Of a stretch of 64,000 bases of DNA, positions 1 through 64,000 are shown in pieces. How positions within the stretch are numbered: the first letter of the stretch is position 1; every line of letters begins with the position of its first letter. The position numbers were made by a program, and so were the translations under genes. The notes beneath the pieces are model-generated. The model did not search any database and was not told the DNA's origin. It was given only the letters and a program-made list of their open reading frames with translations. Origin of the DNA: Monocercomonoides exilis PA203 (Eukaryota; Protista; Preaxostyla); assembly GCA_001643675.2 (NCBI GenBank), contig LSRY02000008.1:1550001-1614000 (forward strand), given 5' to 3'.

Positions 1-953
1 TTGGCAGTGTTTGATTTCTAAGCGAGATTGTTTGTGGGGAGCAGGGTTCAGCTTGTGGCTGATCAGAGAAGCGGATGCGCACAAGGGAAAATGGTGCTTG
101 CAGCAGCTGTGTTTGATGGGATGATTTTTCAGCAGTTCGTTTTTTGGAAAAGAAAGGCGAGCGTGGGAAACAATGTTTGTGAGAAGGAGCAGGAAAAGGG
201 AGGGGAATGGAGAATGTGGAGCGGAGTGCCTGTTTAGTGGAGGAACACATTGCAGCTGGGATTTATATACACATATATTTTATTTTGAAGGAGGAGACAA
301 AAGCGAGTTGGATGATGTATTTTGGGAGCTGATGGGTGGGGATGTTTGGGGATGCAGTCATGCTCATCTGGGCAGTCGAGGCAGCACAGGAAAGGGAATG
401 TGCGATTGCTTTGTGAGCCTTTCGGGGCGTAGGAGGAGACAGGTTTGGTGATTTGTTTCATGAGAATTTATATATTTTATATTTAATTTTATTTTTCTTT
501 ATTGAGGATATTGAGTGAATTGCCGAAAGATGCATGGAAAGCCATCACATGTTGTCTGAGGAGCGCAGATTGTTTTTATAGCTTTGCTTGAAGAATGAGA
601 GGAGGAAGAGAAATATTTCATATTTTTTGGATTGAGGGTTGGATGGAGGAAGATGGGAAGAGAAGAATGGTGAGAGTGAGGTTGAATGGGCAATGGAAGA
701 GCGGGTGAGAACAACATTTAATTTTACTTTATTTGGAATTGAGTTTGAAAGGCGAAGGCGTGGTGTGGTGTGGTGCTTGGAGTGGATGATGTTGGGGCGA
801 GAGGTATTTGGAGAGAGGCAAACAGGGGAAGAGGGGAGTGAAGGGAAATGAAGAATTGTGGAGGTATTTTATTCTTGTTTGTTCATTTTCTTCATGTTCC
901 ATTTTTTATTTATATTTGCATATTTTAATTTGATTGATGTGTAATGCGATCAG

Positions 954-2696
954 GTGTTGTCAGAAGCGCTTGGGGAGCATGAAGCATGGGACATGGAAAC
1001 AGAACTTTTTTCTGGGACATTCCTGGAAGAAATTGGGAGAAAACAGCAGCAGAAGATATTTGGCAGAATGATCCAGGCGGAAAAAATGGAGCGAACGGGA
1101 AAAGAAATTTTTGTGAATATTTTTTTTAACAAAAATCTTTTCGGAAGCAGCAGCAGAAGAGGCAGGAAAATGGATACAGCTGCATTGGGATATTTTGCGA
1201 CGCTTTGCCAAGATGCGTGGGGAAGAGAAGGAAAAGGAAGAACTTCTGTGAATGAATTTAATTTCTCATCTTTTTGCCAATATTTCGCTTCACCTTCTAT
1301 TTCCCTTGTATCCCTCTCCAAATTATCATTTTTCAACATCTCAACAGCAAATGATGTATGCTCACCTTCAGCCACTACGTCAACCCAAACCATATGTCTG
1401 ATGAGCAGTTGCTCATTTTTATCTGTTTGTGATGCATATGATGGCGGAATTGTTCCTTCTCTGAACAACCCCTTGGCTTCCTTATCTGTTTCGAACACAT
1501 CATTCGTTGGATGTTGTCGGACAAGGAATGTTGAATGCATTGGAACTTCAGAAGTTCCATTGAAACCAGACAGACAGAATGAAACATTCAATGGAGCTAA
1601 TTCATTCACTTGGTGTGAATGGAGTGGATCGAAGGCAACAGGAAAAGGTGAAACATATTCCGATGGCACTTCGAACGGTGGCGCAATATTCATGTATGGT
1701 CAATCGTCCGCAACTGTTTCAGTTTCGCATTGTGCATTCAATGAATGTGTTGCGTATTACGCAGGCGGAGGGATTTCATGCTATAGCATTAAATCAGTTG
1801 AGATTGTGAATAACACATTTAATGCTTGTGCTTCTGAAACATGGATTGGAGGAGGGGTGTTCGTTTTTACGATTTCAACATGCGTTCGGATCAGCGGATG
1901 TGAATTCCAGAATTGCAAAGCAAATAATGGTGGAGGAGGCTTAAGATTAGAAAATTTTCAGGTTTCAGGAACTGGATGTATTGGAAATGAAAATGGTGGA
2001 GGAGAGAGTGCGTGTGTGTTTGACTGCAGCTTCACTTCATGTTCAATCACAAATTCGTATGGTGGAGGCATGTGTTGTGTTACTGTTCCTGCGACGCAAT
2101 TCAAAATGAGGGGCATTCAGTTCATTTCATGCAATGCATTATCACATGGTGGAGGGTTTCATTTAAATCCGAATAGACCAACAACGTCAAATGATAGAAT
2201 CTATTGTTATTTCCTGTTCTTCCACGAATGCAAATGCTCAGCCAATCCTCCACGCGGATATGATATTGCATATGCAGATTATTACAAACATTTTTTGGAT
2301 TCTGGAAATCCGTTCAACGAGTGCTATACTACAAATGCTGATGATAGGAGATTATTTTTTGAACATTACAATGGAAGTAATTGGATTGGTCAACATACAG
2401 AAAAGAAGTGGTGGTTGAAAGACAAGACGATTTATGTCTCAGTGAGCGGGAATGACTTGTATGAGTTGTGTGGGGCAAATACAACAATTCCATGCAAAAC
2501 AGTGAAGAAAGCGCTTGAGATGTGTGAGGTGCAGGTTAGCTTGGCAATCACGCTGCTGGAAGGGGATCATCAAAGTGAGGCAACAACAGTTGAGATTGGG
2601 GAAAAGAAGATTTCAGTCATCGGGAGTGGTAAAGATAAGAGTTTGATTGAAACAGGGGCACTTTTTCCTTCTTCTGTAGAAGAGCCGTTCATGTAA
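954..2696 (+). CDS. Cys/Gly-rich right-handed beta-helix (pectin lyase-like / Pmp-like) protein, paralog A, left arm of P1; possibly a truncated cassette
   Basis: 580-aa ORF with repeated GGA(I)/GGG and FxxC motifs (NGGAIFM, FNECVAYYAGGGI, FQNCKANNGGGGL). GTG start follows a putative intron acceptor (tcag at 950-953); first ATG at 993. The homologous C-terminal frame continues out of frame after 2696 (VTSVHLKMIHMNIDHNSS). Confidence 0.8.
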   Translation: MLSEALGEHEAWDMETELFSGTFLEEIGRKQQQKIFGRMIQAEKMERTGKEIFVNIFFNKNLFGSSSRRGRKMDTAALGYFATLCQDAWGREGKGRTSVNEFNFSSFCQYFASPSISLVSLSKLSFFNISTANDVCSPSATTSTQTICLMSSCSFLSVCDAYDGGIVPSLNNPLASLSVSNTSFVGCCRTRNVECIGTSEVPLKPDRQNETFNGANSFTWCEWSGSKATGKGETYSDGTSNGGAIFMYGQSSATVSVSHCAFNECVAYYAGGGISCYSIKSVEIVNNTFNACASETWIGGGVFVFTISTCVRISGCEFQNCKANNGGGGLRLENFQVSGTGCIGNENGGGESACVFDCSFTSCSITNSYGGGMCCVTVPATQFKMRGIQFISCNALSHGGGFHLNPNRPTTSNDRIYCYFLFFHECKCSANPPRGYDIAYADYYKHFLDSGNPFNECYTTNADDRRLFFEHYNGSNWIGQHTEKKWWLKDKTIYVSVSGNDLYELCGANTTIPCKTVKKALEMCEVQVSLAITLLEGDHQSEATTVEIGEKKISVIGSGKDKSLIETGALFPSSVEEPFM

Positions 2697-3027
2697 CGAG
2701 TGTCCATTTGAAAATGATTCACATGAATATCGACCACAACTCATCGGCAAGTTTTTCACTGGATGTGGCTGTGATTGATAGAGAAGGCTGGATGCTTCCC
2801 TGGAAGAATATATAAATGAATGTATCTTTTTTTATAAGAATTGAAATTAAGAATGTTGTTATCAACTATTTTATGCCGCTTTGCATGACAATGCGAGTGA
2901 GTAATTCACAAATAATTCTGTTTCAAAAATCTTGAATACAAAATCGAAATTTTATTGCATGAATTCGATAAAGAATTATTAGATAAAAAACGACAGAATA
3001 AATTTTTACCAAAAATTTTTTTAAAAA

Positions 3028-3659: not shown

Positions 3660-6255
3660 TTTGAATCTGATAATGTTAAATAAAGTTATGAGTGAAATAA
3701 AGATTTAATGCTTTGTGCAAAAAAAGCTTTAAAAATCATATTTTCCCCCATTTTTGTCAAAATCATTTCAAAAGGTGTGCATGAGGATGGTTTCAAAAAT
3801 TATTCTTCTAGGATGGTTTTTTAATCCGGACAAAATTTGAAAAATAAAATATCTCAACAAATATTCAATATTAATTAACATTAATTTGCAAAGCTGTATA
3901 CAAACATACGTGAGATCTATTTGTATGCAAAATTTTTAATAGAAATGTTGTATATTTTTTGAAATAAATACTTTTTATTTTTGAAAATCTGACTTTTGAA
4001 GAATTTTTCTATTTTAACAAAACGATTCAGCTCATCTTTTATACACACAACTTATTTTTTCCATGATAAAAACAATTTTGGTTATTTTTTATTTTTTAGA
4101 AATTTGCTTGTCTAGATTGTATGGAAATCCATCATTTTTGAAAAATCATTGCCAAAGGGATAACTTTAAAAATATTTTTGACGAAACTCAACAACGTCCA
4201 AGTGAATTTCACTCATTCATTAATTAAAATAATAGTTATTTAAAATTAATACAAAGCTATAATACTAAATGATTCAGTGAAGATTCCACTAAAATTTTTT
4301 TTAATTATTTCATTGATAATTTTTTTGAGTCAATTTTTTAAGAAATTTGAATAATATGGCTATATTTTTATGAAAAGTTCCTTTTGTTTAATTTTCTAAT
4401 AAAGAAAAATTTCATATTTCAATTAAATTTCTGTTCCCACTCACCAAATTTCGCTGTCATGAAAATAAAATTTTTACAATGTTATTATTTTCATTCAAGA
4501 AAAGTTTCGTGAGAAGGAACAGAAAATTGATTGAAATATGAAATTTTTCTTTATTAGAAAATTAAACAAAAGGAACTTTTCATAAAAATATAGCCATATT
4601 ATTCAAATTTCTTAAAAAATTGACTCAAAAAAATTATCAATGAAATAATTAAAAAAAATTTTAGTGGAATCTTCACTGAATCATTTAGTATTATAGCTTT
4701 GTATTAATTTTAAATAACTATTATTTTAATTAATGAATGAGTGAAATTCACTTGGACGTTGTTGAGTTTCGTCAAAAATATTTTTAAAGTTATCCCTTTG
4801 GCAATGATTTTTCAAAAATGATGGATTTCCATACAATCTAGACAAGCAAATTTCTAAAAAATAAAAAATAACCAAAATTGTTTTTATCATGGAAAAAATA
4901 AGTTGTGTGTATAAAAGATGAGCTGAATCGTTTTGTTAAAATAGAAAAATTCTTCAAAAGTCAGATTTTCAAAAATAAAAAGTATTTATTTCAAAAAATA
5001 TACAACATTTCTATTAAAAATTTTGCATACAAATAGATCTCACGTATGTTTGTATACAGCTTTGCAAATTAATGTTAATTAATATTGAATATTTGTTGAG
5101 ATATTTTATTTTTCAAATTTTGTCCGGATTAAAAAACCATCCTAGAAGAATAATTTTTGAAACCATCCTCATGCACACCTTTTGAAATGATTTTGACAAA
5201 AATGGGGGAAAATATGATTTTTAAAGCTTTTTTTGCACAAAGCATTAAATCTTTATTTCACTCATAACTTTATTTAACATTATCAGATTCAAAATATGGA
5301 ACGAAATATTGTGCTTTAAGAATTTTGTTCCATTCTTCTCTAACAAATATTTTTCTCAATTTTTGAATTTTATTGTAATTATATGCATTGTTCAAGTTGA
5401 GTTATAATGAAATGATTGTTAAAAAAGTTTGGAACAAATCTCAGTTTTTTTCATAATTACAAAAATTTGGCCCCATATATTGAATTTTCATATCTGTAAA
5501 TAAACATCATTGATATAATAACATGTTTTGTGACCTCACACGTTTGTTAAAAAAAAATGAACCGATTTTATTCATATTTTTTGATCACAAAAAGTTAATC
5601 AAAAGTGCATAATTTTTCAAACAAAATGCCTGAAGTGTGATATTTTACCCCAAATAAAAATATCAAAAATTAACCACCCATATCTTTTTTTAATTTTCAT
5701 AAAAATTAAAAGAAAAAATTCAATAAATACTTCATAGGAATAAAGTTACTTAAGAGGCAAGTTTCTTTTCCAATATATTTGCATCTTTTCGGAAAAAAAA
5801 AAAAAAAAATACTGCTTTTTTGATTAGGTGTATTTTTAAAAAATGCGTGTGAATGTGAAAAGTCTCCTGTCTCCAAGCATCCAACCCTTTCTAATTTTTC
5901 TTATCTTATCTTATCTTATCTTATCTTTTAAAAAAATTTTTGGTAAAAATTTATTCTGTCGTTTTTTATCTAATAATTCTTTATCGAATTCATGCAATAA
6001 AATTTCGATTTTGTATTCAAGATTTTTGAAACAGAATTATTTGTGAATTACTCACTCGCATTGTCATGCAAAGCGGCATAAAATAGTTGATAACAACATT
6101 CTTAATTTCAATTCTTATAAAAAAAGATACATTCATTTATATATTCTTCCAGGGAAGCATCCAGCCTTCTCTATCAATCACAGCCACATCCAGTGAAAAA
6201 CTTGCCGATGAGTTGTGGTCGATATTCATGTGAATCATTTTCAAATGGACACTCG

Positions 6256-7998
6256 TTACATGAACGGCTCTTCTACAGAAGAAGGAAAAAGTGCCCCTGT
6301 TTCAATCAAACTCTTATCTTTACCACTCCCGATGACTGAAATCTTCTTTTCCCCAATCTCAACTGTTGTTGCCTCACTTTGATGATCCCCTTCCAGCAGC
6401 GTGATTGCCAAGCTAACCTGCACCTCACACATCTCAAGCGCTTTCTTCACTGTTTTGCATGGAATTGTTGTATTTGCCCCACACAACTCATACAAGTCAT
6501 TCCCGCTCACTGAGACATAAATCGTCTTGTCTTTCAACCACCACTTCTTTTCTGTATGTTGACCAATCCAATTACTTCCATTGTAATGTTCAAAAAATAA
6601 TCTCCTATCATCAGCATTTGTAGTATAGCACTCGTTGAACGGATTTCCAGAATCCAAAAAATGTTTGTAATAATCTGCATATGCAATATCATATCCGCGT
6701 GGAGGATTGGCTGAGCATTTGCATTCGTGGAAGAACAGGAAATAACAATAGATTCTATCATTTGACGTTGTTGGTCTATTCGGATTTAAATGAAACCCTC
6801 CACCATGTGATAATGCATTGCATGAAATGAACTGAATGCCCCTCATTTTGAATTGCGTCGCAGGAACAGTAACACAACACATGCCTCCACCATACGAATT
6901 TGTGATTGAACATGAAGTGAAGCTGCAGTCAAACACACACGCACTCTCTCCTCCACCATTTTCATTTCCAATACATCCAGTTCCTGAAACCTGAAAATTT
7001 TCTAATCTTAAGCCTCCTCCACCATTATTTGCTTTGCAATTCTGGAATTCACATCCGCTGATCCGAACGCATGTTGAAATCGTAAAAACGAACACCCCTC
7101 CTCCAATCCATGTTTCAGAAGCACAAGCATTAAATGTGTTATTCACAATCTCAACTGATTTAATGCTATAGCATGAAATCCCTCCGCCTGCGTAATACGC
7201 AACACATTCATTGAATGCACAATGCGAAACTGAAACAGTTGCGGACGATTGACCATACATGAATATTGCGCCACCGTTCGAAGTGCCATCGGAATATGTT
7301 TCACCTTTTCCTGTTGCCTTCGATCCACTCCATTCACACCAAGTGAATGAATTAGCTCCATTGAATGTTTCATTCTGTCTGTCTGGTTTCAATGGAACTT
7401 CTGAAGTTCCAATGCATTCAACATTCCTTGTCCGACAACATCCAACGAATGATGTGTTCGAAACAGATAAGGAAGCCAAGGGGTTGTTCAGAGAAGGAAC
7501 AATTCCGCCATCATATGCATCACAAACAGATAAAAATGAGCAACTGCTCATCAGACATATGGTTTGGGTTGACGTAGTGGCTGAAGGTGAGCATACATCA
7601 TTTGCTGTTGAGATGTTGAAAAATGATAATTTGGAGAGGGATACAAGGGAAATAGAAGGTGAAGCGAAATATTGGCAAAAAGATGAGAAATTAAATTCAT
7701 TCACAGAAGTTCTTCCTTTTCCTTCTCTTCCCCACGCATCTTGGCAAAGCGTCGCAAAATATCCCAATGCAGCTGTATCCATTTTCCTGCCTCTTCTGCT
7801 GCTGCTTCCGAAAAGATTTTTGTTAAAAAAAATATTCACAAAAATTTCTTTTCCCGTTCGCTCCATTTTTTCCGCCTGGATCATTCTGCCAAATATCTTC
7901 TGCTGCTGTTTTCTCCCAATTTCTTCCAGGAATGTCCCAGAAAAAAGTTCTGTTTCCATGTCCCATGCTTCATGCTCCCCAAGCGCTTCTGACAACAC
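6256..7998 (-). CDS. beta-helix protein paralog A, mirror copy (right arm of P1)
   Basis: Translation identical to 954..2696; coordinates sum to 8952. Confidence 0.8.
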   Translation of the reverse strand: MLSEALGEHEAWDMETELFSGTFLEEIGRKQQQKIFGRMIQAEKMERTGKEIFVNIFFNKNLFGSSSRRGRKMDTAALGYFATLCQDAWGREGKGRTSVNEFNFSSFCQYFASPSISLVSLSKLSFFNISTANDVCSPSATTSTQTICLMSSCSFLSVCDAYDGGIVPSLNNPLASLSVSNTSFVGCCRTRNVECIGTSEVPLKPDRQNETFNGANSFTWCEWSGSKATGKGETYSDGTSNGGAIFMYGQSSATVSVSHCAFNECVAYYAGGGISCYSIKSVEIVNNTFNACASETWIGGGVFVFTISTCVRISGCEFQNCKANNGGGGLRLENFQVSGTGCIGNENGGGESACVFDCSFTSCSITNSYGGGMCCVTVPATQFKMRGIQFISCNALSHGGGFHLNPNRPTTSNDRIYCYFLFFHECKCSANPPRGYDIAYADYYKHFLDSGNPFNECYTTNADDRRLFFEHYNGSNWIGQHTEKKWWLKDKTIYVSVSGNDLYELCGANTTIPCKTVKKALEMCEVQVSLAITLLEGDHQSEATTVEIGEKKISVIGSGKDKSLIETGALFPSSVEEPFM

Positions 7999-9039
7999 CT
8001 GATCGCATTACACATCAATCAAATTAAAATATGCAAATATAAATAAAAAATGGAACATGAAGAAAATGAACAAACAAGAATAAAATACCTCCACAATTCT
8101 TCATTTCCCTTCACTCCCCTCTTCCCCTGTTTGCCTCTCTCCAAATACCTCTCGCCCCAACATCATCCACTCCAAGCACCACACCACACCACGCCTTCGC
8201 CTTTCAAACTCAATTCCAAAAATAAAAAAAAAATTAAATGTTGTTTTCGCCCGCTCTTCCATTGCCCATTCAACCTCACTCTCACCATTCTTCTCTTCCC
8301 ATCTTCCTCCATCCAACCCTCAATCCAAAAAATATGAAATATTTCTCTTCCTCCTCTCATTCTTCAAGCAAAGCTATAAAAACAATCTGCGCTCCTCAGA
8401 CAACATGTGATGGCTTTCCATGCATCTTTCGGCAATTCACTCAATATCCTCAATAAAAATATATATTAAATAAAAAATATCATGAAATTTTTATTTAAGA
8501 AAATATACAAATTTGAAAAAAAATATCAAAGATATTTTTTTAAAAAAAACAAAACAAATAACAACAAACTGTTTCATAATGAATTTTCTTCACACACTTT
8601 TTCTAATTCGTCCTTTCTTCTTCATTTCCTTTTTTTCTTAAAATATCGTTCTTTTATGCCTATAAATTCCATTCTTCCATTTTCGCTTCCCTTTTACTCC
8701 AAAAATCATTTATTTCCAATCCTTGGTCCTATTTCCAGAGGAATGACTTCACAAACTCCATTCCATAAAGAACTGGAAAAGAAGAAGATTCCATCTGAAG
8801 AGCTCCTTCCCATCCCTTTCTGATGCATCACCTTCTTCTTCTTTCCATTTCCCCCAAAAACAACATCAACGCCCCTCCACCACACATCCTCCATCTCTTC
8901 CACAAGCAATGACAAAATCTCTTCCACTTCATTCTCCATCATCCTTCTTCAAATTAAAAATAAAATATCTCCATCATTTTTCTGTCTCTTTCCATTACAA
9001 GACAGCTCCCATAGTCAGCCCCTCATCTTCCTCTGTCTC

Positions 9040-11760
9040 CGCACCTCCAATGCAAAGCGCCAGTGCTGATGTTCCTTCTTCCCGTCTTCCTCCGCCTCCG
9101 CCTCCATCCCTTGCCCTGCAAATACCTGGCGCGTCCAAACTGTTCATCTAGAAAAAATAAAAAAAGATAAAAAAATATCTCTCGCTATTTTTTACTTCAA
9201 CCCCACTTCCCTTTCTTATCAAACATACATCCACAAAATCTCTTCTCTTTGTTCCGCCTCATATGAACCCCCTCTCTCTCCCTGCATTCAAAAATAAAAA
9301 AAAAATAATATTCCTTTTCCATTTCTTCTCCATTTCCTTTCCATCTCTCATCCTCCCCTCCAATAAATATATTCCATTCACTCCACCCATCTTCCTCCCT
9401 TCTTGTCTCCCTTCTCATCCCACCTCCTCAACATCAAATTCCTTTTCTCCAACAATAAACACGACCTCTGCACCTTCCAACTCACAAAAATCGAAAAAGC
9501 AACCTTTCCAAAACTCCATCCCCATTCATCCCACAAACATCCATTTGCCTCTTAAACCTCACAAAAATATCTCTTTTCCACAAGAAATATTCCTTTATCG
9601 TTCCTTTCCCCTCTCAAAACCCTGTTTCCTCCAAGAACTCAACTCCATCACTCCATACCATAAATCCATTCTTTTGTTATCGCATTGTCTTCATATGCCC
9701 ATTCAGCCACGGCACATCGAGTTGTGCTCCTTTTCTTTTGTGGCTCTTATTCGTTATGGAAAATGATCAAGAAATGTCAAATGCTCAGAAACTGTCAACG
9801 GAGTGAGATTCCGAAGCTAAAACAAAGACAGATTGACTAAACGAAATATTTCCAGTGAAAAGGTTGGGTATTACAAAAGAATGTTTGCTTGATGGAAGAT
9901 GAAATTGTTTATTTTGATTGTTGGAATGCTGTGGAGCGACAATATTTTCAATAGAAATGTTGAATTTTTGATGTATGTGTTTTATATTGTTCTATATGTT
10001 GTGAAGATATTTCCATCCGTAACCTCTCCAAAGTCGTGATTCAGACGATTTATTAAAAATGGACAATTTATTCTATGCAGAACAGAACAGCAATGAAGCG
10101 AGTCAAATGTTATCTTACAAATATATTATTAGAGCCTGAATGTATTTTGTTACGAATGTTTATGTTACTCATTTTGGACTCAACATGCGCGATGGATAGA
10201 AATGCGATGAAAAATGAGTTTTGATGGAGCAGAAATCAACGGGGTTGGAAGATATCCAAGGCAAAAAGGAAGAATGTCCAATCTCTATGAAAAGGGAGCG
10301 TTTTTTAAAAAGAGGAAGAAGACATTTTCATTTTTAAGTTTGTTGGAAAGATTGGGGCAAATAACTGAAACAGGAGATTGAAATCAGTTTGGACAGAACA
10401 AGGAGCCTTTCTTTGGAGAAGAAGGGCAAGACATTGATTTTACGGACCAAGGGGAGCGATGGAACTGCTTTTCATTGCTTGGGTTGAGAGGCGAAAAAAC
10501 GAGAAAAACGGACAGTTTTGCGTAATACGGCAGCTGGAGGCAAATTACAGGCAAAATGGACTTTTATCGTTTGACCTTTGTCTTCAGCCTTCTATCATTG
10601 AAACGTTATTCACAAGAGCAGAGAACGAGGTTGCGATGCTGAGAATATCTTCTGACAGAAGGTATATAGTATTCAAACTTGACAATAACATCGCATTCAC
10701 CATCTTTATCATCTTCATCTCTGTCATTGCCATCATCGCTGTCATCATCATCCTCATCTTCATTAAAATTATATTGAAGCATTTTTATTGTTTGTGTATT
10801 ATTCGAGTGGAATCAGTGCCAAGAATTGGAAATAAGCAAGTTGTTGGAAGCAGAACAGAATCGATTTCATTGGCAATGAAATTGGCAGCGGAAACAAAGA
10901 AGGCGAGTTTTGTTAGCAGAAAAGAACAATAATTTGAGAGGCTTTAGAAGAAGAAGAAGAAAGCGTGTGAAGATTGGCAATAAATATATTTTAGAGTTTG
11001 TTTTGTATTATTTTTTTTCCTCCAATTTTTTCACATATTTTATTTTTATTTATTTTGAGAGATTAAGATTTATGGAAGGATGTTTTCAGGCAATGAATGA
11101 ACATGGGAAAAAGAGCACATTTGATGCTTTTCAGAAATCAGACAATGACAAAAAATTTGAGAATATAGATGAATAAGCCAGAGGCATTAAATGAAATGAA
11201 TGTGAGAGGAGGGATTTGAAGATTTATGTTAAATTTTGAAAAAGAAGAAGGCGAAGCGACGGAAAAGAATAATCGGAAAATTGAGGAAATGGCTGAAGAA
11301 GAAATGTGACAGGAAGTCAAGAAGGATATGAAGATGAAGAAAAGGAAGCAGATTGCGAAAGGAAAATGGTACTGGTTTGTGATATTTTGTATTACATTTT
11401 AAATATTTTTTTTCTTTTTTTTTTAATTGATAATAGGGACTTTTGCATGAATATTCAAAAGGGATGAATGTGAATGGAATACAGAAAGAAGGCAGGAGAC
11501 GAAAACAGAAGGAAAAAAAAAAAAGATTTAGGCGAAAACATTCCTATCAGAAGAGGCGAGCGAAGACAAAAAAAAGATACTAAAACTTATTGGGATATTT
11601 TGCGAGATGGCTCCAAGAGGCAAGGGGAAGAGAAGGAGGCAAAGAAGGAAGTGTTTCGACATGCAAATCTCTTATCTCATCTTCAACCACATTTCTCTCA
11701 TCACCTTCAATCCCTCTTGCTCTCCAAACTCACATTTTTCAACATTTCAACAGCAAATGA
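9040..11760 (+). repeat. segmental duplication: spacer between divergent beta-helix genes, homologous to ~54910-57640 (mirrors ~22790-25510 and ~44130-46860)
   Basis: Long colinear high-similarity match by eye, e.g. 9661-9800 vs 55519-55660 and 10230-11560 vs 56080-57420. ORFs 10459..10932 and 56314..56793 are near-identical. Confidence 0.85.
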
Positions 11761-13102: not shown

Positions 13103-13342
13103 GATGTATGAATAAGTTTTCCCAACATTTTTCAAAAACAAAAGTGGATTAATATTTTGCATATAAATGCCAAAAAAAATGCATTTAGTCGTAGCTATTG
13201 TTTGTAATAGGAAAAAGCTTTTTTACATATATATTTATCGATTTTTCATCATTTTTTTTCATTCTTGTATTTATTACAAAAACATTATTAGCAACAGAAA
13301 AAACAAATATATTTTTTTCTGTGCAAAATTTGAAAAGAACAC

Positions 13343-13597
13343 GGGTGATTATTTTCGAAATCATAACTTTTTTTGAGGAGTGGATAATTATGAAAATTTT
13401 ATTAATTCGAAAAATATTTTTTTGATGAAATGTTTTGTTCATTTTTTTGAATCGAAAGACAAAGTTTGATGTGAAAAAAAGACAGAGATGATTTTTGCTG
13501 TTGTTATTTCTTTTCTGTGTTCATTGACATAAATTCAAAATATCAATTTTGAACAGATAATTTTTTTCGAAAAAAATGATTTCAAAAATAATCACCC
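13343..13597. mobile_element. MITE family A (255 bp; TIR ~GGGTGATTATTTTTGAAATCATAACTTTT)
   Basis: gggtgattattttcgaaatcataac ... atgatttcaaaaataatcaccc. Same length and internal similarity as the copies at 29241, 39325 and 61710. Confidence 0.7.
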
Positions 13598-13628
13598 ACA
13601 TCAGGTCGAAAAAATATATTTTTATTAA

Positions 13629-18296: not shown

Positions 18297-18394
18297 GCTG
18301 GAGTTTCCACAGATAATAACTCGCATGAATGAAAGATTTTATTCACAATAACAAGGGGAAAAAATGATTCTGCATAAGCAATCATAAAAATTAA

Positions 18395-20922: not shown

Positions 20923-20953
20923 TTAATAAAAATATATTTTTTCGACCTGATGT

Positions 20954-53797: not shown

Positions 53798-56700
53798 TGA
53801 TTCATGGCAAAGCGTTGCAAAATATCCTAATGTGGCCGTATCCCTTTTCCTATCTCTTCTGCCCCTTCTTCATCGTCTGCTTTCCCGGTATTCCTTTTCC
53901 TTTTGTTTCCGTCTTTTTCCTTCTTTCCATATTCCATTCGCATCCATTCATTTTGAATATTCACGCAAAAGCCCCTGCTATCATTTAAAAAATATATTTA
54001 ATAAAACAAAAATTTAAAAATATACAAAAATATAAAATTGTTAAAAAAAATTCCAATAATAGATATGAAAAGCCCCGTACCATTTTCTTTTCACCATCTT
54101 CCGCTTCTTCTTCTCAAATTTTCTCAAATTTCTTCTTCTGTCATATCATCAATTCCTTGATCCCATTTTTCGCCTTCATTAAGATTCATCGTAAATGCCA
54201 TCCAAAACCTTCAAATAAAAATATCTTCTTCTCGTTTCCTTTCATTTATATTTTGCGCCCGCTCATCCCTCCATGCTTCCCTCCAATTATTATATCCAGA
54301 TTTCTTTATATGCATCCAATAACCCCTCAAACCACATCCCATGTTCATTCATTGTCGTTGAACATTCTTGCAAAAATCCTAATTTCATCAAAAAAAAAAA
54401 ATAATATATAAAAAATTAAAATTAAAAAAATATAAATACACACCCTTATAATGATCATTCTTCTCAAACTTTCTTCTCCTCCTCCAAATATCGTTCCTTT
54501 CTGCAACAAAACCCATCTGTCCCTTCTTCGCTTCCCTTCTGCTTCCACACAAAAAAGTTAATCAAAGTCCAACTTCTTGTTCTGCTTCTCTCAAATAACC
54601 TCCACAAACTCCGTTCTATTAAAAAAAACTGGTAAAGAAGAAGATTCCATCTGAAGAATCCCTTCCCATCCCTTATCGCTGTATTGCCCTCTTCCTCTCT
54701 CCATTTCCTCTAAAATATCAACGCCCCTCCACCAAATGTCTCAACCCCTTCGCCCAAATCCCTTCTCCTTCACTCCCTGTTACTTCTTCTCCCGTCATCC
54801 TTCTCCTAATCAAAAATAAATACTTCATTTCTTTGTATGTCTCTGGCGCAAGACACCCTCTCATAGCCAGCACCTCATCTCGATCCATCCCTGTCGCGAA
54901 TCCGTCCCCACACCTCCAATGCAAAGTGTTGAGCCTGATGTTCCTTCTTCCCGTCTTCCTCCGCCTCCGCCTCCATCCCTTGCCCTGCAAATGAGAGGCG
55001 CGACCAAACGGTTCGCAAAATAAATTATATAAAAATATGAAGAAAATTTTTCTTCACTTTTTTTTCTTCAACCCCACTTCTCTTTCTTATCAAACATCAG
55101 TTCGCAAATACTCTCCCTCTTGCCCTGCCCCATATGAACCCCCTCTCTCTCTGCATTTGAAAAAAAAAAACACCTCCTCCACATATCTCTCCATTTCCTT
55201 TCCATCTCTAATCCTCTCCTCCAATAAATATATTCCATTAGCCCCACTCATCTTCTTCCCCTCTGTTCCCTCTTATCCCACCTCCTCAACAGCAAATTCC
55301 TTTTCTCAAATAATAAACGCAACTTCCACACCTTCCAACTCACAAAAATCGAAAAAACTACCCCACAAAAGTCTATCCCTATCCATCTCCTACACATCCA
55401 TTTTGCCTCTGAAATATCACAAAAATACCTCTTTTCCACAAAAAATATCCTTTAATCGTTCCATTCCCTCTCTAAACCCTGCCTCCTCCAAGAACTCAAC
55501 TCCTTCACCCCACACCATAAATCCATCCTATTGTTATCGCATTGTCTTCATATGCCCATTCAGCCACGGCACATCGAGTAGGACTTTCTTTTCTTTTGTG
55601 GCTCTTATTCGTTATGGAACATGATCAAGCAATGTCAAATGCTCAGAAACTGTCAACGGGGTCAGATTCCGAGGTTTAAACAAATACAGGTTGACCAAGT
55701 GAAATATTTCCAGTGAAAATGTGGGGTATTACAAAAGAATGTTTGCTTGATGAAAGATGAAATTGTTCATATTGATTGATGAATGGCTGTGGAGCAACAA
55801 TATTTTCGATGGAAATGATGAATTTTCAATGTATGTAATTTTTATTGTTCTGTTGATTGTGAAGATGTTATCATCCGTAACCTCTCCAAAGTCGTGATTC
55901 AGACAACTTATTTAAAATGAACAATTTATTCCATGCAGAGCAGAACAGCGAGGAAGCGAGACAAATGTTATGTTACAAATATATTAGAGCCAGAATGTAT
56001 TTTATCATAAATGTTTATGTGACTTGTTATTAACTCAACATGCACAATCGATAGAAATGTGATGAAAAATGAAATTTAATGGAGCAGAAATCAACGGGGT
56101 TGGAAGATATCCAAGGCAAAAAGGAAGAATAACCAAATTCAATGAAAAGGGAGCGTTTTTTAAAAAGAGGAAGAAGACATTTTCATTTTTAAGTTTGTTG
56201 GAAAGATTGGGGCAAATAACTGAAACAGGAGATTGAAATCAGTTTGGACAGAACAATGCGCCTTTCTTTGGAGAAGAAGGACAAGACATTGATTTTACGG
56301 ACTGAGGAGAGGGATGGAACTGCTTTTCATTGCTTGGCTTGAGAGGCGAAAAAACGAGAAAAACGGACAGTTTTGCGTAATACGGCAGCTGGAGGCAAAT
56401 TACAGGCAAAATGGACTTTTATCGTTTGACCTTTGTCTTCAGCCTTCTATCATTGAAACGTTATTCACAAGAGCAGAGAACGAGGCAGTGATGCTGAGAA
56501 TATCTTCTGACAGAAGATGTATAGTATTCAAACTTGAAAATAACATCGCATTCACCACCTTTATCATCTTCATCTCTGTCATTGCCATCATCGCTGTCAT
56601 CATCATCCTCATCTTCATTAAAATTATATTGAAGCATTTTTATTATTTGTGTATTATTCGAGTGGAATCAGTGCCAAGAATTGGAAATAAAGCAAGTTTT

Positions 56701-57510
56701 TGGAAGCAGAACAGAATTGATTTCATTGATGTTGAGATAGGCAGCAGAAGCAAAAAAGGCGAGTTTTGTTGGCAGAAAAGAACAATATTTTGAGAGGCAC
56801 TCGAAGAAGAAGAAGAAAGTGTGTGAAGATTGGCAATAAACATATTTTTAGAGTTTGTTTTGTATTAATTTTTTTTCTCCAATTTTTCACATATTTATTT
56901 TTATTTATTTTGAGAGATTAAGATTTATGGAAGGACATTTTCAGGCAATGAATGAACATGGGGAAAAGAGCACATTTGATGCTTTTCAGAAATCAGACAA
57001 TGACAAAAAATTTGAGAATATAGATGAATAAGCCAGAGGCATTAAATGAAATGAATGTGAGAGGAGGGATTTGAAGATTTATGTTGAATTTTGAAAAAGA
57101 AGAAGGCGAAGCGACGGAAAAGAATAATCGGAAAATTGAGGAAATGGCTGAAGAAGAAATGTGACAGGAAGTCAAGAAGGATATGAAGATGAAGAAAAGG
57201 AAGCAGATTGCGAAAGGAAAATGGTACTGGTTTGTGATATTTTGTATTACATTTAAAATATTTTTTTTCTTTTTTTTTTTTATGATGACAGGGAGTTTTG
57301 CATGAATATCCAAAAGGGATGAATGCGAATGGAATATGGAAAGAAGGAAGAAAACGGAAACAGAAGGAAAAAAAAAAGATTTAGGCGATAACATTCCTAT
57401 CAGAAGAGGCGAGCGAAGACAAAAAAAGATACTGAAACTTATTGGGATATTTTGCAAAATTTTTCTGAATGAAGGGGAAGAGAAGGAAACGTTGAAGGAA
57501 AGAAATTTCT

Positions 57511-59074
57511 GTGAGAGAATCTCTTATCCAATCTTCAACCCCATTCCTCTCATCAATCTTCATTACCCTTATATCCCTATCTCACCTGACATTTTTCAAT
57601 ATATCAACAGCAAATGAGGCATGTTCACCTTCAACCACAATGTCAACCCAAGCTACATGTCTGATGAGCAGCTGCACATTTTCATCAGTTTGCAATGGGT
57701 ATGATGGAGGGATTGTTCATTCCCTCAACAATCCTTTAGCTTCATTGTCTGCGTCAAACACCTCATTCGTTGGGTGTTGTCGGGCAAGAAATGTTGTATG
57801 TGAAGGAACTGCAGACAACAAGCTGACTCCAGGGAGACAGAATGAAACAGAAAATGGAGAAAATTCATTTATTTGGTGCGAGTGGAATGGATCAAATACG
57901 ACTGGAACAAATAATACTCACACCGATGGGGTCTCAAATGGAGGGGCAATTTGTATGTACAATCAGTCATCTGCCACTGCATCAGTTTCACATTGTTCAT
58001 TCAACAACTGTTTTGCTTATTGGGATGGAGGTGGAATATTGTGTGCAAATATTAAATCTGTTGAGATTGAAAACAATTCGTTCAACTCATGCACAGCTCA
58101 AAGAAATGCTGGAGGAGGGATGTGCGTTGTGGCAATTACAACATGTGTTCGTATCAGCGGATGTGAATTCCAGGATTGTAAAGCAAATGGCTATGGAGGA
58201 GGACTTTATCTTAATGATTTTCAGGTTTCAGTACAAGGATGCATTGGAACAGAAAGTGGAGGAGGAGAGAGCGCGTGTGTGTTTGACTGCAGTTTCACTT
58301 CATGTTCAATTACAAGCACATGGGGTGGAGGCATGTATTGCAGAAATGTTCCCAATCAATTCAAGATTAGAAGCGTCAGGTTTATTTCGTGTAATGCATC
58401 GACCAGGGGGAGGTGGATTTCATTTGGAGCCAGAAAAAAAAACTGTGCCAGCTAATGGGCTTTATTGCTATTTCCTCTTCTTCCATGAATGCAAATGCTT
58501 GGGTGATCCTCCACATGGTCACGATATGATATACTTAGATAATTACAATTTATATTTGGATTCTGGGAATCCGTTCCATGAATGTTACACAACAAACACA
58601 GATGATCAGAGAGTGTGCTATGGATATATTGCATCGAGTTCAACAAGTTGGACATTTCAGCACACAGAAAAGTGGGATTGGCTGAAGAGAGGGATTCTCA
58701 ATCGGTTTGTGGCGGTGAGTGGTGGTGGTGAAGAAGAGTTGTGTGGATTGGATGAGTCAAGTGCATGCAGAACCATTGGTGTTGCAGTCATTCGGAGCGT
58801 GATTCAAGTGAGCCTGTCTGTTACGCTGATGGAAGGGAATCACACAAGCGAGACAGAAACAATTGAGATTGGAGAAAAGAAGATTTCAGTCATTGGGAAA
58901 AGAAGAGAAACATGTTCGATTGGAACAGAAACAAATTTTTGTATTTCATCATTCTCTTCTTTATCTTTTCATCACTGTTATTGCCTGTTTTTAAGATTTT
59001 TGTCTGTTGGAGTTATTCCGCTGGAAGCAGAAATGAATCAATTCATTCTGCAATCAGATGAGCAGCGTAGATGA
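57511..59074 (+). pseudogene. beta-helix paralog E, mirror copy, split by a +1 frameshift in a G run
   Basis: ORFs 57511..58455 and 57842..59074 together reconstruct E. The sequence is gaccaGGGGGaggtgg at ~58401-58416, versus 4 G in the 42708 copy. Could be a sequencing error. Confidence 0.65.
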
Positions 59075-59498
59075 GGCAGATGGATGAGTTGATTGAAAGG
59101 GAAAATATGTGAAGAATAAAGAAAGAAAGAAGCCATGAAAATTGATTGTTATAAAAGGCATGAATTTATTTTTAATAAATAATAAATATTATTTTATTAT
59201 TTTATTCTGAAATTAGGACATTTAAGCGAGAAGATTTACAGCCGATGAAAACATATGGAATGAGAGATGCTGGAAAGAAGGCAAAAGATGACAACAGCCA
59301 AAAAAGCGATTTTGTGGAAAGACAGATGAGGAAGAATGTTGGAATGCATTTCCATTTTGAGGCGCTGAAGGGAAAGATGCATTTCTATTATTTTACAAAA
59401 AACTTTTCAGAAGGTGCAAAAGAGGCAGGAAAATGGAATTTGAACTTTTCCGAGTTTATTACAAAATTGCGGATAGATACAAGAGAAGCACATAGTAA

Positions 59499-60980
59499 AT
59501 GGGTGAAGAGAAAGGAAGAATTATTGTGAATGAATCACACCTCTATTCTTTTTGTCCATTCCTCTCAACTCCCTCGATGCCCTTTGCTTCTCTCTCCAAA
59601 CTCATTTTTTTTAACATTTTAACAGCATCTTCAGATTGTCCGTCCCCAGCAACTACATCAACCCAAACCTCATATATGATGTGCAGCTGCTCATTTTCGT
59701 CTGTTTGTGATGCATATGATGGCTGGATTGTTCATTCCTTCAACAATCCTTTAGCTTCATTGTCTGCCTCAAACACATCATTCATCGGATGCTGCAGGAC
59801 AAGAAATGTTGAATGCGCTGGAACTGAAGACAATAAGAAACAGCCAGGGAGACAAAACGAAACAGAAAATGGAGCAAATTCATTCACTTGGTGCGAGTGG
59901 GATGGATCGAGGACAACAGGAGAAAGCGACTCGTATGCTGATGGAATATCAAGCGGAGGGGCAATCTGCATGTACAGCCAGTCGTCGGCATCGGTGTCTG
60001 TTTCGCATTGCGTGTTCAATGGATGCATTGCATACAGCCGGGGAGGGGGAATAATGTGCTATAATATAAAATCCGTTGAGGTTATGAACAATTCTTTCAA
60101 TTCATGCACCGCGCAAAATCAATTGGGGGGAGGAATGTATGCTTTTACGATTTCAACGTGTGTTCGGATCAGTGGATGTGAATTCCAGAATTGTAAAGCA
60201 AACAGTCAAGGAGGAGGGCTTTTGCTTCATACTTTTGATGTTTCAGGAACAGGGTGCATTGGAACAGAAAGTGGAGAAGGGGAAAGTGCGTGTGTGTTTG
60301 ACTGCTGTTTCACTTCATGCTCAGTTTCAACTTATCATGGAGGAGGCATTTACTGCTACGGCGTTCCTTTTCAATTCAAAATGAGGAATATTCAGTTCAT
60401 TTCGTGCTCGGCAATGGGGTATGGAGGAGGAATGAGATTGGAACCGAAATTGTCAACGGCACCAGATGATGGCTTCTATTGTTATTTTCTTTTTTTCCAT
60501 AAATGTGAATGCAAATGTTCGGCCAATCCTCCTTATGGTCACGATATGGTATATGGAGATCATTTTAATCTCTATTTGAATTCAGGAAATCCATTCTATG
60601 AATGTTACACCACAAACACAGATGACAAGAGAGTGTGCTACGCATACAATGCATCGAATTCGGGGAGTTGGGCATATGACGAAACATCAAAAAATGATTG
60701 GCTGAAGAGAGGGATTCTCAACCGATTTGTGGCAGTGAGTGGTGGTGGTGAAGAAGAGTTGTGTGGATTGGATGAGCCAAGTGCATGCAGAACCATTGGT
60801 GTTGCAGTTGATAAGAGCAAGATCCAGGTGAGCCTGTCTGTTACGCTGATGGAAGGGGAACACATAAGTGAGGCAGCAATAATTGTGATTGGATCAAAGA
60901 AGATTTCGGTCATTGGAACAGGAAAGATTTCTTCTTTTTCTTCTTCTTTTTCTTCTTCTTTTTCTTTTCTTCTTCTTTAG
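59499..60980 (+). CDS. beta-helix protein paralog G (mosaic of D-, B- and E-like segments)
   Basis: 493-aa ORF. 5' half equals D. YNASNSGSWAYDETSK block equals B. RGILNRFVAVSGGGEEELCGLDE block equals E. Confidence 0.8.
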   Translation: MGEEKGRIIVNESHLYSFCPFLSTPSMPFASLSKLIFFNILTASSDCPSPATTSTQTSYMMCSCSFSSVCDAYDGWIVHSFNNPLASLSASNTSFIGCCRTRNVECAGTEDNKKQPGRQNETENGANSFTWCEWDGSRTTGESDSYADGISSGGAICMYSQSSASVSVSHCVFNGCIAYSRGGGIMCYNIKSVEVMNNSFNSCTAQNQLGGGMYAFTISTCVRISGCEFQNCKANSQGGGLLLHTFDVSGTGCIGTESGEGESACVFDCCFTSCSVSTYHGGGIYCYGVPFQFKMRNIQFISCSAMGYGGGMRLEPKLSTAPDDGFYCYFLFFHKCECKCSANPPYGHDMVYGDHFNLYLNSGNPFYECYTTNTDDKRVCYAYNASNSGSWAYDETSKNDWLKRGILNRFVAVSGGGEEELCGLDEPSACRTIGVAVDKSKIQVSLSVTLMEGEHISEAAIIVIGSKKISVIGTGKISSFSSSFSSSFSFLLL

Positions 60981-61709: not shown

Positions 61710-61964
61710 AGGTAATTATTTTTCAAATCATAACTTTTATCGGTGTGTTGAATATCCAAAGGTTTCTCGTCATTAGCCAAATAATTTTCATCTGAATGTT
61801 GAATGCATGTCAATTATTACAAAAGCCAAAGCTAGATACGAAAAAATAGTAGAGGCGTCATAAAACGGATCCATCACTTTTTAGTGTTCATTTATGAATA
61901 CTCAAAACAAATATTCAAACCGAAATTTTTAACAGAAATAATTTGATTTCAAAAAAGATAACCC
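61710..61964. mobile_element. MITE family A copy (255 bp)
   Basis: aggtaattatttttcaaatcataactttt ... ttgatttcaaaaaagataaccc, TA-flanked. Confidence 0.7.
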
Positions 61965-64000
61965 ATAATATATACGCAAATATCTTTGAAATATGATGTG
62001 ACATTGTATGTGAAAATTAATTTTTATCATTTCTATCTTTTCAAAAAGATCTTCAAAATAATGTTTTTGTTTTATTTTTATGATCAAAGACATGCTTGTA
62101 TTCCCACAAGCTTTGTGTTTCTGTTGTTTTAAATGTTATCATTGTTGACATATTCACGATTTCAAAATTCAAAATTACAGGGTGGTCCATATTTCTTTGC
62201 AAAAATATTAAAAAATGGGAAATCAAAAATAAAAATATCAAAAAATATTCGATAAAACTGAATTTTGTTTGTTAATCGGTTTGTAAACTGATCAAATACA
62301 TGATAAGCTTCAATATGTTAAAGTTTGGAGCTTCCAGATATTTGAACAATTTGTTCCTGGAATACAAAAATTTTTCTGAAAATTTCAACAGATATGATTT
62401 TTCAATGGTTTGATAGTTGGAAAAGGTGATTGCAATTTGTAACGACTCATAAAGGTGATTATTTTTATGAAAAATGTTTTTTAACAAAAATTAAAATACC
62501 ATATTTTATTATTTTAACAAAATATTATGGACCACCCTATATTTTCTCTTTTTAATCTGTTTTCCCCCTTCATTTTTCTCATTTCACGTGAAACATGAAA
62601 AATTGAATAACCTTCACAGATGGAAATGACTGAGATATTTTCTTTTCGACAATATGAGTATTGTCGAGTTCTTCAACACATTTTTCAATATCTTTTTAGT
62701 GTTTGACAGATTCGATGGTTAAAGAGAAAAATAAACCCAACATCACCATTATCCGATTCGAGAGCTAAATGTTTTTATTATTAATTTTTCACAATCTCAA
62801 AAACTAAGGAACTTAATTTATGATTTCATAATAACAAAAGATATCGAATAATAATTTTTTGTTCAACTTAAGTTGCATTTCAATTCTTTCCGATTTTTTC
62901 CCAAAAGATTTTTATTTTCTGACAAACTGCTGCTTAATGCGATGTCATTATCAACAAATAAATAATTTGAAATGATTATTTTTATTAATACATAAAACAC
63001 TCGAATGCTTATCCAAAATGAATTAATTATTTCTGGAAACTTTCTTTTTATCTGTCAAAAGGGATTAATGTATTTTTCTTTTTATGAATTGATTGATTTT
63101 CCAATTTTTTTTTTATTTTTCTAAAATGGAACTTTTCAAAACGAACCACAGTAACATCTCTATATTTTTCACGTAACAGAAATAATGAGAAATTGGAAAA
63201 ATAATCAGATCAAAAGAAGATGATGATATTTATCCCTTTTGACAGATAAAAAGGATTTTTCCAGAAATAATTAATTCATTTTGGATAAGCATTCGAGTGT
63301 TTTATGTATTAATAAAAATTAACTTTTCAAATTATTTATTTGTTGATAATGGCATCGCATTAAGCAGCAGTCTGTCAGAAAACAAAAATTTCTTGGAAAA
63401 AAATCGGAAAGAATTGAAATGCAACTTAAGTTGAACAAAAAACTATTATTCGATATCTTTTGTTATTATGAAATCATAAATTAAGTTCCTTAGTTTTTGA
63501 GATTGTGAAAAATTAATAATAAAAACATTTAGCTCTCGAATCGGATAATGGTGATGTTGGGTTTATTTTTCTCTTTAACCATCGAATCTGTCAAACACTA
63601 AAAAGATATTGAAAAATGTGTTGAAGAACTCGACAATACTCATATTGTCGAAAAGAAAATATCTTAGTCATTTCCATCTGTGAAGGTTATTCAATTTTTC
63701 ATTTTTCACGTGAAATGAGAAAAATGAAGGGGGAAAACAGATTGAAAAGAGAAAATAATTTTGAATTTTGAAATCGTGAATATGTCAACAATGATAACAT
63801 TTAAAACAACAGAAACACAAAGCTTGTGGGAATACAAGCATGTCTTTGATCATAAAAATAAAACAAAAACATTATTTTGAAGATCTTTTTGAAAAGATAG
63901 AAATGATAAAAATTAATTTTCACATACAATGTCACATCATATTTCAAAGATATTTGCGTATATATTATGGGTTATCTTTTTTGAAATCAAATTATTTCTG
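61933..64000. repeat. palindrome P5 (centre ~63148, runs off the window end; arms more diverged; MITE in the left arm only)
   Basis: 63961-64000 is the reverse complement of 61933-61972, and 63001 pairs with 63296. Scattered substitutions separate the arms. Confidence 0.9.
62178..62539. mobile_element. Tc1/mariner-type MITE, 362 bp, TA target-site duplication
   Basis: TA|CAGGGTGGTCCATA ... TATGGACCACCCTA|TA. The mirror arm of P5 has the empty site with a single TA (63756-63757). Confidence 0.9.

Follow-up and report, generated by a model that had tools for sequence, protein, structure and literature searches.

Large inverted duplications with the marks of fold-back copying in a putative beta-solenoid gene cluster of Monocercomonoides exilis

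Monocercomonoides exilis is a protist without a mitochondrion. We analyzed a 64,000-nt stretch of the genome of strain PA203 (here referred to as the window; 1550001-1614000, or 1.550-1.614 Mb, of contig LSRY02000008.1, called C80, which is 1,962,414 bp long) that contains a series of large palindromes whose arms carry genes of a putative beta-solenoid protein family. These palindromes are probably recent inverted segmental duplications, and their anatomy points to hairpin-primed fold-back copying that would have been resolved by homologous recombination with paralogs. The locus looks like the product of a known break-repair accident that has recurred naturally and made hybrid genes, and not like a proven purpose-built diversity machine. 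Palindromes and inverted repeats are unmentioned in the paper that describes the assembly (82.3 Mb in 101 contigs, built from nanopore reads; PMC8767320), and a literature search combining Monocercomonoides with palindrome found no relevant paper.

Results

Palindrome architecture of the window

Palindromes were defined by a repeat search and self-BLAST of the window, and the arm pairs were then aligned. Self-BLAST delimits P1 (465-8489, axis 4477, 99.2% identity between the arms), P2 (6728-27824, axis ~17280, 97.9%), P3 (26890-31846, axis 29368, 99.3%), and P4 (41153-60622, axis 50885, 98.3%). The first-pass annotation of this window had described five large inverted duplications; P1 to P4 were recovered where it had placed them, but the fifth, P5 (62540-63757, axis 63148), is a small imperfect repeat with 568-nt arms at 92% identity around an 82-nt spacer. 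P5 sits within the 1.58-kb spacer of another palindrome, P6, the arms of which are ~7.7 kb long. The left arm of P6 (54483-62177) was matched to the opposite strand of C80:1613756-1621414, past the window end, at 97% identity in a genome search; its first sign within the window was a 245-nt segment (61933-62177) that is 100% complementary to 63756-64000 around an axis at 62966. P5 thus reads as an old imperfect inverted repeat and not as a large palindrome of its own. P6 and the right arm of P4 have 6.1 kb in common. Beside P5, the 362 nt at 62178-62539 are unique among the 184 kb of sequence compared and make the P6 spacer asymmetric; they may represent an insertion in one P6 arm or a deletion in the other.

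The left arm of P1 (465-4468) carries gene A and is free of substitutions from 732 to ~4424, and the right arm (4485-8489) carries its twin A'. The outer 1.1 kb of that right arm (7355-8489) doubles as the outer part of the P2 left arm. The perfect part of the P2 left arm (7355-17213) holds gene B, a ~2-kb dispersed repeat, and a 185-bp repeat, with paralog-level BLAST homology extending out to 6728. An asymmetric 134-nt spacer (17214-17347), which is not a miniature inverted-repeat transposable element (MITE), separates it from the perfect part of the right arm (17348-27197), which ends within gene C. The perfect parts of the P3 arms lie at 26974-29269 and 29466-31762. In P4, the perfect part of the left arm (41499-50812, with BLAST homology out to 41153) contains the 5' part of gene D plus genes E and F, with small interruptions by diverged sequence at two places, 46.3 kb and 49.7 kb; beyond a 139-nt spacer (50813-50951), the right arm (50952-60270) carries F', E', and the 5' part of D'. 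By arm alignment, substitution-free sequence starts at 732/8220 (P1), 7355/27197 (P2), 26974/31762 (P3), and 41499/60270 (P4). These starts reproduce the limits (7355 and 26974-27197) that had been given for the overlaps between neighboring palindromes. The earlier count of 12 family copies was likewise confirmed, the copies forming six inverted pairs, and the distances reported from gene end to axis (1.8, 4.2, 1.1, 1.3, and 2.2 kb) are correct.

Three zones of identity in the palindrome arms

Eight palindromes could be aligned arm to arm: P1 to P4 and those at C71 (a second contig), C80:1494k, C80:1366k, and C80:1522k. In all eight, the arm differences on the centre side are confined to the first 3-91 nt beside a spacer of 16-197 nt. 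Past this inner stem come 2-10 kb without substitutions, followed in each case by an abrupt drop to paralog-level identity. Such a three-zone arrangement is predicted by hairpin-primed synthesis, in which an annealed stem would retain its old mismatches while sequence copied beyond the stem would be exact.

A comparison among four palindromes of the P4 type bears on how often this may have happened. Their spacers and stems are homologous at 84-89% identity, but the boundary between imperfect and perfect sequence falls at 18, 60, 91, and 44 nt. The copied stem variant also differs: P4 has one variant on both sides, the palindrome at C80:1730k has the other on both sides, and that at C71 is a hybrid. 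Because both the boundaries and the template arm differ, these palindromes are best explained as independent events on one inherited imperfect repeat. The P4-type spacers also contain a ~12-nt patch (window 50925-50940) that occurs in two forms, one in P4 and C80:1730k and the other in C71 and C80:1504k; the stem variants divide these palindromes differently.

Age is the point on which a second explanation differs. Architectures of the P4, P2, and P5 types are found at paralogous loci that differ by 4-16%, while the arms within each locus are identical; in addition, P4 retains its interior diverged patches, and the palindrome at C71 has an outer zone of ~2 kb at ~90% identity. These observations are consistent with old palindromes whose arms were homogenized by ordinary arm-to-arm gene conversion, as on primate sex chromosomes, with no new fold-backs. 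Patchy conversion, however, would not leave a single unbroken perfect tract starting less than 100 nt from the spacer, and stopping sharply, in eight of eight cases. Moreover, the turning points of P1 and P3 are MITE-like elements of an ordinary dispersed kind, among whose matches no paralogous palindromes were found. We consider an origin by homogenization alone improbable.

Sequences at the palindrome centres

The P1 axis coincides with a hairpin MITE-like element of 246 nt (4354-4599) that has a 16-nt loop and its centre at 4476.5. A genome search gave at least 992 candidate copies, and the element was matched on both strands. Folded as single-stranded DNA it forms a near-perfect hairpin (dG of -93 kcal/mol, z = -22.8) whose stem mismatches lie only in the inner 45 nt. 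The P3 axis falls on a different MITE-like element of 257 nt (29240-29496, centre 29368) with terminal inverted repeats of ~30-50 nt and at least 690 candidate copies; only the terminal repeats pair, and the interior forms a 196-nt spacer. In both palindromes, the axis and the centre of the element match to the base.

The centres of P2, P4, and P5 do not belong to dispersed repeats; for each of them there is a small number of diverged homologues, nearly all of which are themselves centres of large palindromes. The P2 spacer has one homologue (96%), at the centre of another palindrome at C80:1376.7k, and the homologues of the P4 spacer at C71:119.8k, C80:1730k, and C80:1504.6k (84-87%) are each a palindrome spacer. 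P5 has homologues at C80:1532.5k (85%), the centre of a palindrome with 2.4-kb arms, and at C53:542.9k (84%), where the arms are ~280 nt, so that the P5 seed is seen with arms of 280 nt, 568 nt, and 2.4 kb at three loci. Judged by these homologies, the P2, P4, and P5 centres are inherited imperfect repeats. Two other kinds of element were considered and rejected. The arms consist of locus-specific, gene-bearing DNA and not of element repeats, which argues against foldback transposons, and the spacers of 16-197 nt contain nothing that an invertible switch could switch.

Outer ends, a chimeric gene, and overlapping chains

The outer ends of P2, P3, and P4 lie within family genes, where identity falls to 73-85%. 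Arm alignment placed these drops inside paralogs, as the first-pass annotation had noted. P4 ends inside D and D' at 41499/60270. The junction between P2 and P3 could be followed in a four-way alignment, described here in gene A coordinates. A and A' are the same from position 521 inward. A' is in turn identical to C, from the upstream region through the 5' part, as far as ~1560, and C equals C' from ~1400 on; between ~1400 and ~1560, A, A', C, and C' are all identical. In the window this shared interval is the 224-nt crossover zone at 26974-27197 on the forward strand. Gene C is therefore a chimera in which an A-type upstream region and 5' end are joined to a C'-type body, and this single zone explains the in-frame chimera as well as two palindrome ends, that of P2 on the right and that of P3 on the left.

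The palindromes overlap in two chains, P1-P2-P3 and P4-P6. In the left chain, one segment occurs three times, at ~521-1560, mirrored at 7355-8434, and again at 26118-27160, with the middle copy inverted. In the right chain, 54483-60270 occurs three times, and the middle copy is again inverted relative to the other two. Copy number along both chains is 2-3-2. The centres are intact; what is cut short is the distal side of the outer copies, which continue into other paralogous DNA. The chains lie ~350 kb inside the 1.96-Mb contig, with continuous flanks on both sides; this interstitial position and the lack of any distal loss led us to reject breakage-fusion-bridge cycles as a source.

An inverted middle copy within a triplicated segment with duplicated flanks is also the outcome of a replication error of the type described as origin-dependent inverted-repeat amplification (ODIRA). 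Under this model, an initial inverted triplication would have been trimmed to 2-3-2 by later secondary rearrangements. Such an origin fits the junctions, which sit at short inverted repeats interrupted by loops of 16-197 nt, and a 1-2-3-2-1 copy number is the pattern of duplication-inverted triplication-duplication (DUP-TRP/INV-DUP) rearrangements, which has been derived from ODIRA (PMC10766186). However, an ODIRA product would triplicate the whole segment between the junctions and place the secondary deletions beside the centres, whereas in the two chains every centre is complete and has a tiny spacer, and sequence is missing from the outer ends, where paralogous DNA is joined. We therefore regard initiation by ODIRA as possible but unlikely.

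Assembly artefact as an explanation

Fold-back (template-complement) nanopore reads or misjoins by the assembler, with the arms made identical by polishing, could in principle produce palindromes of this kind. The assembly was made from native genomic DNA sheared to ~20 kb and sequenced from a 1D ligation library without whole-genome amplification, assembled with Canu 1.8, and polished with Nanopolish followed by ten rounds of Pilon (PMC8767320). Its backbone is nanopore only, with a read N50 of 8.9 kb compared with arms of up to 10.5 kb, and the arms are identical. Logan contigs over 26400-32300 are at most ~330 nt long; at the P3 centre they cross the MITE and nothing more, one short-read contig matching 29218-29490 exactly, and none extends over an arm with its flank. 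Polishing was also imperfect in places, as indicated by residual 1-nt indels at 58410 and 58970 and by an indel-rich palindrome at C80:1720-1740k.

Against these points, the use of unamplified native DNA and the presence of spacers that are asymmetric, unique, and not zero-length (82-197 nt) argue against fold-back at the level of reads. The centres fall exactly on MITE-like elements or on seeds that are homologous across diverged loci, the outer ends lie in conserved blocks of paralogs, and the structures are interior to the 1.96-Mb contig. In the diverged outer zones, both arm versions are consistent with short-read contigs from three DNA runs, one of which dates from 2016, and the interior substitution patches kept in P4 indicate that polishing did not simply erase differences between the arms. 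Taken together, we consider an assembly artefact very unlikely.

Some local errors were nevertheless recognizable. E' differs from E only by the indels at 58410 and 58970, both of which break the frame, and at position 27957 all four sequencing runs have C where the assembly has T; these three positions are probable residual assembly errors. In the palindrome at C80:1720080-1740079 (90-97% identity), the arms differ mainly by indels, with 24-96 gap columns per 500 nt and few substitutions. We rejected its interpretation as an old, decaying palindrome, since this indel pattern is typical of an unpolished nanopore consensus where DNA is multi-copy.

The genes and their protein family

The six gene pairs are as follows in window coordinates. 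Gene A (954-2696, forward strand) is a 580-codon open reading frame (ORF) encoding a head-only, putative beta-solenoid paralog, and its twin A' lies at 6256-7998 on the reverse strand. Gene B (11474-13102, forward, 542 codons; twin B' at 21449-23077, reverse) is 98% identical to gene model MONOS_15630 of an older assembly. The chimeric gene C (26554-28230, forward) has its twin C' at 30506-32089 (reverse). Gene D (40675-42270, reverse) has a 5' part identical to that of D' (59499-60980, forward) and a 3' end 99-100% identical to the 3' end of F. Gene E (42708-44258, reverse; protein P0058) is paired with E' (57640-59058) and has a further 99% copy in the right arm of P6, and gene F (48137-49615, forward) is paired with F' (52163-53797, reverse).

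The Pfam model PF13229 (Beta_helix) matched one of eight ORFs weakly, at 21.1 bits, below its gathering cutoff of 25.9. In an AlphaFold2 model built on a 57-sequence alignment of the core of ~430 codons, residues 61-340 form a repetitive beta core predicted with confidence; confidence is low outside it, and the overall predicted local distance difference test (pLDDT) score is 60. Foldseek searches, which included the PDB, returned mostly beta-helix and solenoid proteins as the leading matches, none of them significant (best E value, 0.009). The searches gave at least 139 proteins of similar length; all of the source-named ones among the 120 listed are from M. exilis (MONOS_*), and by these searches the family is specific to this lineage.

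At ~10 dispersed loci, the same domain occurs within open frames of 2,700-3,100 codons. In these giant representatives it lies near the N terminus, some have a signal-peptide-like start, and most have one strong transmembrane segment; two of the three scanned have a C-terminal match to a kinase C-lobe. The window copies are ORFs of 490-580 codons that share a common end point relative to the full-length genes and have no transmembrane segment. By this comparison they are head-only relatives of giant receptor-kinase-like proteins. The surface location that had been assigned to the family is inferred only: the full-length relatives resemble type I receptor kinases, but in the window copies neither a membrane anchor nor an evident signal peptide is present.

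Mosaicism, selection, and transcription

The copies are patchworks of one another, as had been proposed for the 12 in the window. A pairwise homoplasy index (PHI) test on 20 distinct cores with 674 informative sites gave a strong signal of recombination among the paralogs (z = -27.8; the observed value was reached in 0 of 1,000 permutations). In sliding windows, tracts of 200-400 nt at 98-100% identity stand out amid a background of 70-75%, with partners that change along the gene; gene C, for example, matches first A, then a copy at C80:1529k, and then a copy on C71. The changing partners and the PHI result together point to ectopic gene conversion among paralogs.

Nineteen of the 20 cores have no stop codon. 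With a median number of synonymous substitutions per site (dS) of 0.91, the ratio of nonsynonymous to synonymous substitution rates (dN/dS) is 0.28 (range, 0.20-0.42). By these measures the copies are under purifying selection and are not decaying, and the low ratio together with the open frames indicates that the copies themselves are selected as proteins. RNA contigs map to the bodies of C and C' and not to the 2.1 kb between them in the one gene pair examined, and at least this pair is transcribed. Exact runs shared by giant and head-only proteins are at most 49 residues long and not clearly above the family background at the protein level. We found no expression site, one-way transfer, or dedicated factor, with exchange between giant and head-only genes probed at the protein level only.

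Enrichment at the family and occurrence at other loci

As a proxy for palindromes we used equal-score inverted twins on one contig. A first look yielded 2052 family candidates genome-wide, and twins were counted only among the 90 best-scoring of them, in which the 67 head-only copies on C80, C71, and C53 include 13 strict inverted pairs (26 copies). By the same proxy, 4 of 16 tRNA-synthetase copies and 2 of ~68 Ras loci are twinned. Inverted twins are thus ~6-8 times commoner in the head family than in the Ras and tRNA-synthetase genes (odds ratio, ~6-8; P = 2e-6 to 5e-5, values that are overstated because genes nested in one palindrome are not independent); against the tRNA-synthetase baseline alone, the comparison is underpowered (P ~ 0.12). 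The twins outside the family, known by their coordinates only, are two class II tRNA-synthetase pairs, at C29:944713-945765(+)/988616-989668(-) and C50:448772-450188(-)/471723-473139(+), and a Ras-family pair at C7:715978-716448(+)/717125-717595(-). On this evidence the palindromes are enriched at the family but not specific to it. The twin pairs of the family are convergent in 7 cases and divergent in 6 genome-wide, so that the rule of a palindrome centre lying 3' of the gene, which holds within the window, is local to it.

The first-pass annotation had proposed that the locus is a new dedicated diversification system, with a silent archive of cassettes held in the palindromes. A selected system of this kind, varying a surface repertoire, would be in line with the enrichment of inverted twins, with copies that stop at one shared point when set against full-length genes of 2,700-3,100 codons, with strong mosaicism and in-frame chimeras at palindrome junctions, and with a domain that forms the extracellular head of receptor-like proteins in the full-length relatives. 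The same kind of palindrome nevertheless occurs at housekeeping loci, namely tRNA-synthetase and Ras genes; two of the centres are dispersed MITE-like elements, that is, generic repeats; and twin orientation is unbiased genome-wide. Purifying selection, open frames in 19 of the 20 cores, and transcription of C/C' do not agree with a silent archive, and no expression site or one-way transfer was found with exchange probed at the protein level, where the runs shared by giant and head-only proteins do not clearly exceed the background. A dedicated system is highly improbable on this evidence. The other half of the original proposal, fold-back duplication combined with homology-directed repair among paralogs, is supported by the succession of stem, perfect arm, and paralog-level drop, by chimera C, by the recombination signal, and by the twin enrichment.

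Other features of the locus

The window is part of a ~0.7-Mb cluster of head-only paralogs. Between its two palindrome chains, the ~9 kb at 31900-40650 contain no family copy and no ORF of more than 300 codons and have a GC content of 38-42%. Family copies on C71 (172 kb) and at C80:1.60-1.77 Mb have equal ORF lengths and even the same in-frame stop (C71:163874 matches C80:1718618, and C71:5463 matches C80:1765497), which points to either a second haplotype that has diverged or a large segmental duplication.

Several repeats lie in the palindrome arms. The ~185-bp repeat at 16256-16441, present in both P2 arms, is found on at least 20 contigs at 90-98% identity and resembles a short dispersed element. 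The ~2-kb dispersed repeat at 14141-16172, mirrored in the P2 right arm, is 90% identical to C42:711199-713206 and has partial copies of 69-89% identity on C91, C10, C68, and C27. It is missing from the paralogous P2-type palindrome at C80:1376k and therefore entered before the last copying of the P2 arms or was carried across between them. A 3.3-kb segment without a long ORF lies upstream of gene B (8747-12042) and recurs at 43870-47171 and 54600-57896, with a strong GC skew of -0.53 / +0.55; the copy upstream of B is 86% identical to those in both P4 arms. Together with gene E, this segment makes up a ~5-kb module that occurs at least 12 times on C80, C71, and C48 at 78-87% identity.

Discussion

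The observations can be arranged into a sequence of three steps. First, a DNA end or nascent strand would fold back on a short, pre-existing inverted repeat. This repeat would be the hairpin MITE-like element for P1 and, for P3, the paired termini of the other such element; P2, P4, and P5/P6 would have used inherited imperfect repeats, each with a unique spacer of 82-139 nt in its middle. The folded end would then prime synthesis back along its own arm for 2-10 kb. Finally, the copy would be rejoined to the chromosome by homologous recombination with paralogous sequence, which in P2 to P4 would have taken place within a family gene. Such rejoining could yield in-frame chimeric genes (C and D/D'), and serial events that share sequence could yield the overlapping chains P1-P2-P3 and P4-P6. 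Separately, ectopic gene conversions of 200-400 nt would shuffle the paralogs. We infer the fold-back priming, what set it off (a stalled fork or a break), and the succession of events from the structures that they would have left.

Fold-back intermediates may survive where inverted or direct paralogs offer homology for their resolution and where extra copies are tolerated. The family would then be amplified and reshuffled as a by-product of repeat-rich, paralog-rich DNA and of a tolerance of extra copies, with no dedicated machinery, and this passive explanation suffices. A further idea is that M. exilis has an unusually high, heritable rate of hairpin-seeded re-folding, arising from altered hairpin processing or end resection and from a large load of hairpin MITE-like elements, and that the head cluster acts as a contingency locus, in which renewed palindromes and their resolution on paralogs would keep producing in-frame head chimeras, and which would donate head segments to the dispersed full-length receptor-kinase genes. 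We think this quite unlikely.

Several points weigh against fold-back copying with resolution by paralogs. The outer end of P1 is non-coding and lies upstream of gene A. The first 700 nt of the window are 98% identical to C80:1536.6k, and both P1 flank arrangements are present at paralogous loci, which would fit more than one direction and order of events. Long arm-to-arm conversion tracts that start by the spacer could give the same three zones, and sequence cannot separate the two. Multi-mapping reads were used to polish the assembly, and its authors describe the polishing of multi-copy regions as uneven (PMC8767320). To these may be added the short length of the Logan contigs over P3 and, for the enrichment, the restriction to the best-scoring candidates and the nesting of genes within palindromes.

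Foldback inversions have mostly been studied as harmful one-off events in yeast mutants, tumors, and patients. In M. exilis, their signature has become fixed at many places of a wild genome, where it would have built a gene family through in-frame chimeras. The locus may thus offer a natural system in which to study how often such events occur, what seeds them, and how far they act as a creative force in gene-family evolution. They may also help to explain the unclassified repeats that make up 35% of this genome and overlap the tyrosine kinases, which are among its largest families (PMC8767320). As a practical warning, the near-identical inverted twins in this assembly will confound read mapping, polishing, and gene counts.

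Among known systems, the closest experimental match to the palindromes of the window appears to be the foldback inversions, which were worked out in yeast (PMC7467729, PMC10622511) and have also been inferred to underlie human inverted duplications (PMC3907307). In yeast, these inversions form via hairpins and are stabilized mainly by homology-mediated secondary rearrangements (PMC7467729). Like the M. exilis palindromes, they turn on a short inverted repeat whose loop may be small or large, have an exact inverted copy that starts past the stem, and are resolved by homologous recombination with a repeat located elsewhere. They differ in that the palindromes described here are fixed in a natural genome, interstitial, and without terminal deletion; they also recur at inherited seeds, are often seeded by MITE-like elements, and are resolved inside paralogous genes to give chimeric ORFs. 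ODIRA and DUP-TRP/INV-DUP rearrangements (PMC4689423, PMC10766186) share with the chains a triplication with an inverted middle copy, the 2-3-2 copy number, and short interrupted inverted repeats. Unlike what those models describe, the centres here are intact, and the outer ends are truncated and joined to paralogous DNA.

The palindromes of primate X and Y chromosomes have near-identical, gene-bearing, kilobase-scale arms around a unique spacer and undergo arm-to-arm gene conversion. The near-identical gene-bearing arms and an architecture that persists while paralogous copies diverge are common to both, but in M. exilis the arms are much shorter, with a single centre-anchored identity tract and an imperfect inner stem, and there are many independent palindromes, some of them on transposon-like hairpins. 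Silent-cassette gene-conversion systems include Borrelia vls, Neisseria pilS, Anaplasma msp2, and trypanosome VSG. They resemble the head cluster in having clustered, truncated, mosaic copies of a variable extracellular domain and segmental gene conversion, whereas in our protein-level analysis of exchange no expression site or one-way transfer was found, and the copies are transcribed (C/C') and under purifying selection. M. exilis is, to our knowledge, a commensal of the rodent gut, and we know of no antigenic variation in it. Finally, in Tetrahymena, a short interrupted inverted repeat beside a break templates the giant palindrome of the ribosomal DNA (rDNA), a developmentally programmed process at one locus with a defined breakage signal. 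The seeding of a large palindrome by a short interrupted inverted repeat is shared with the palindromes of M. exilis, whose centres have no signal in common and whose formation would have been evolutionary rather than developmental.

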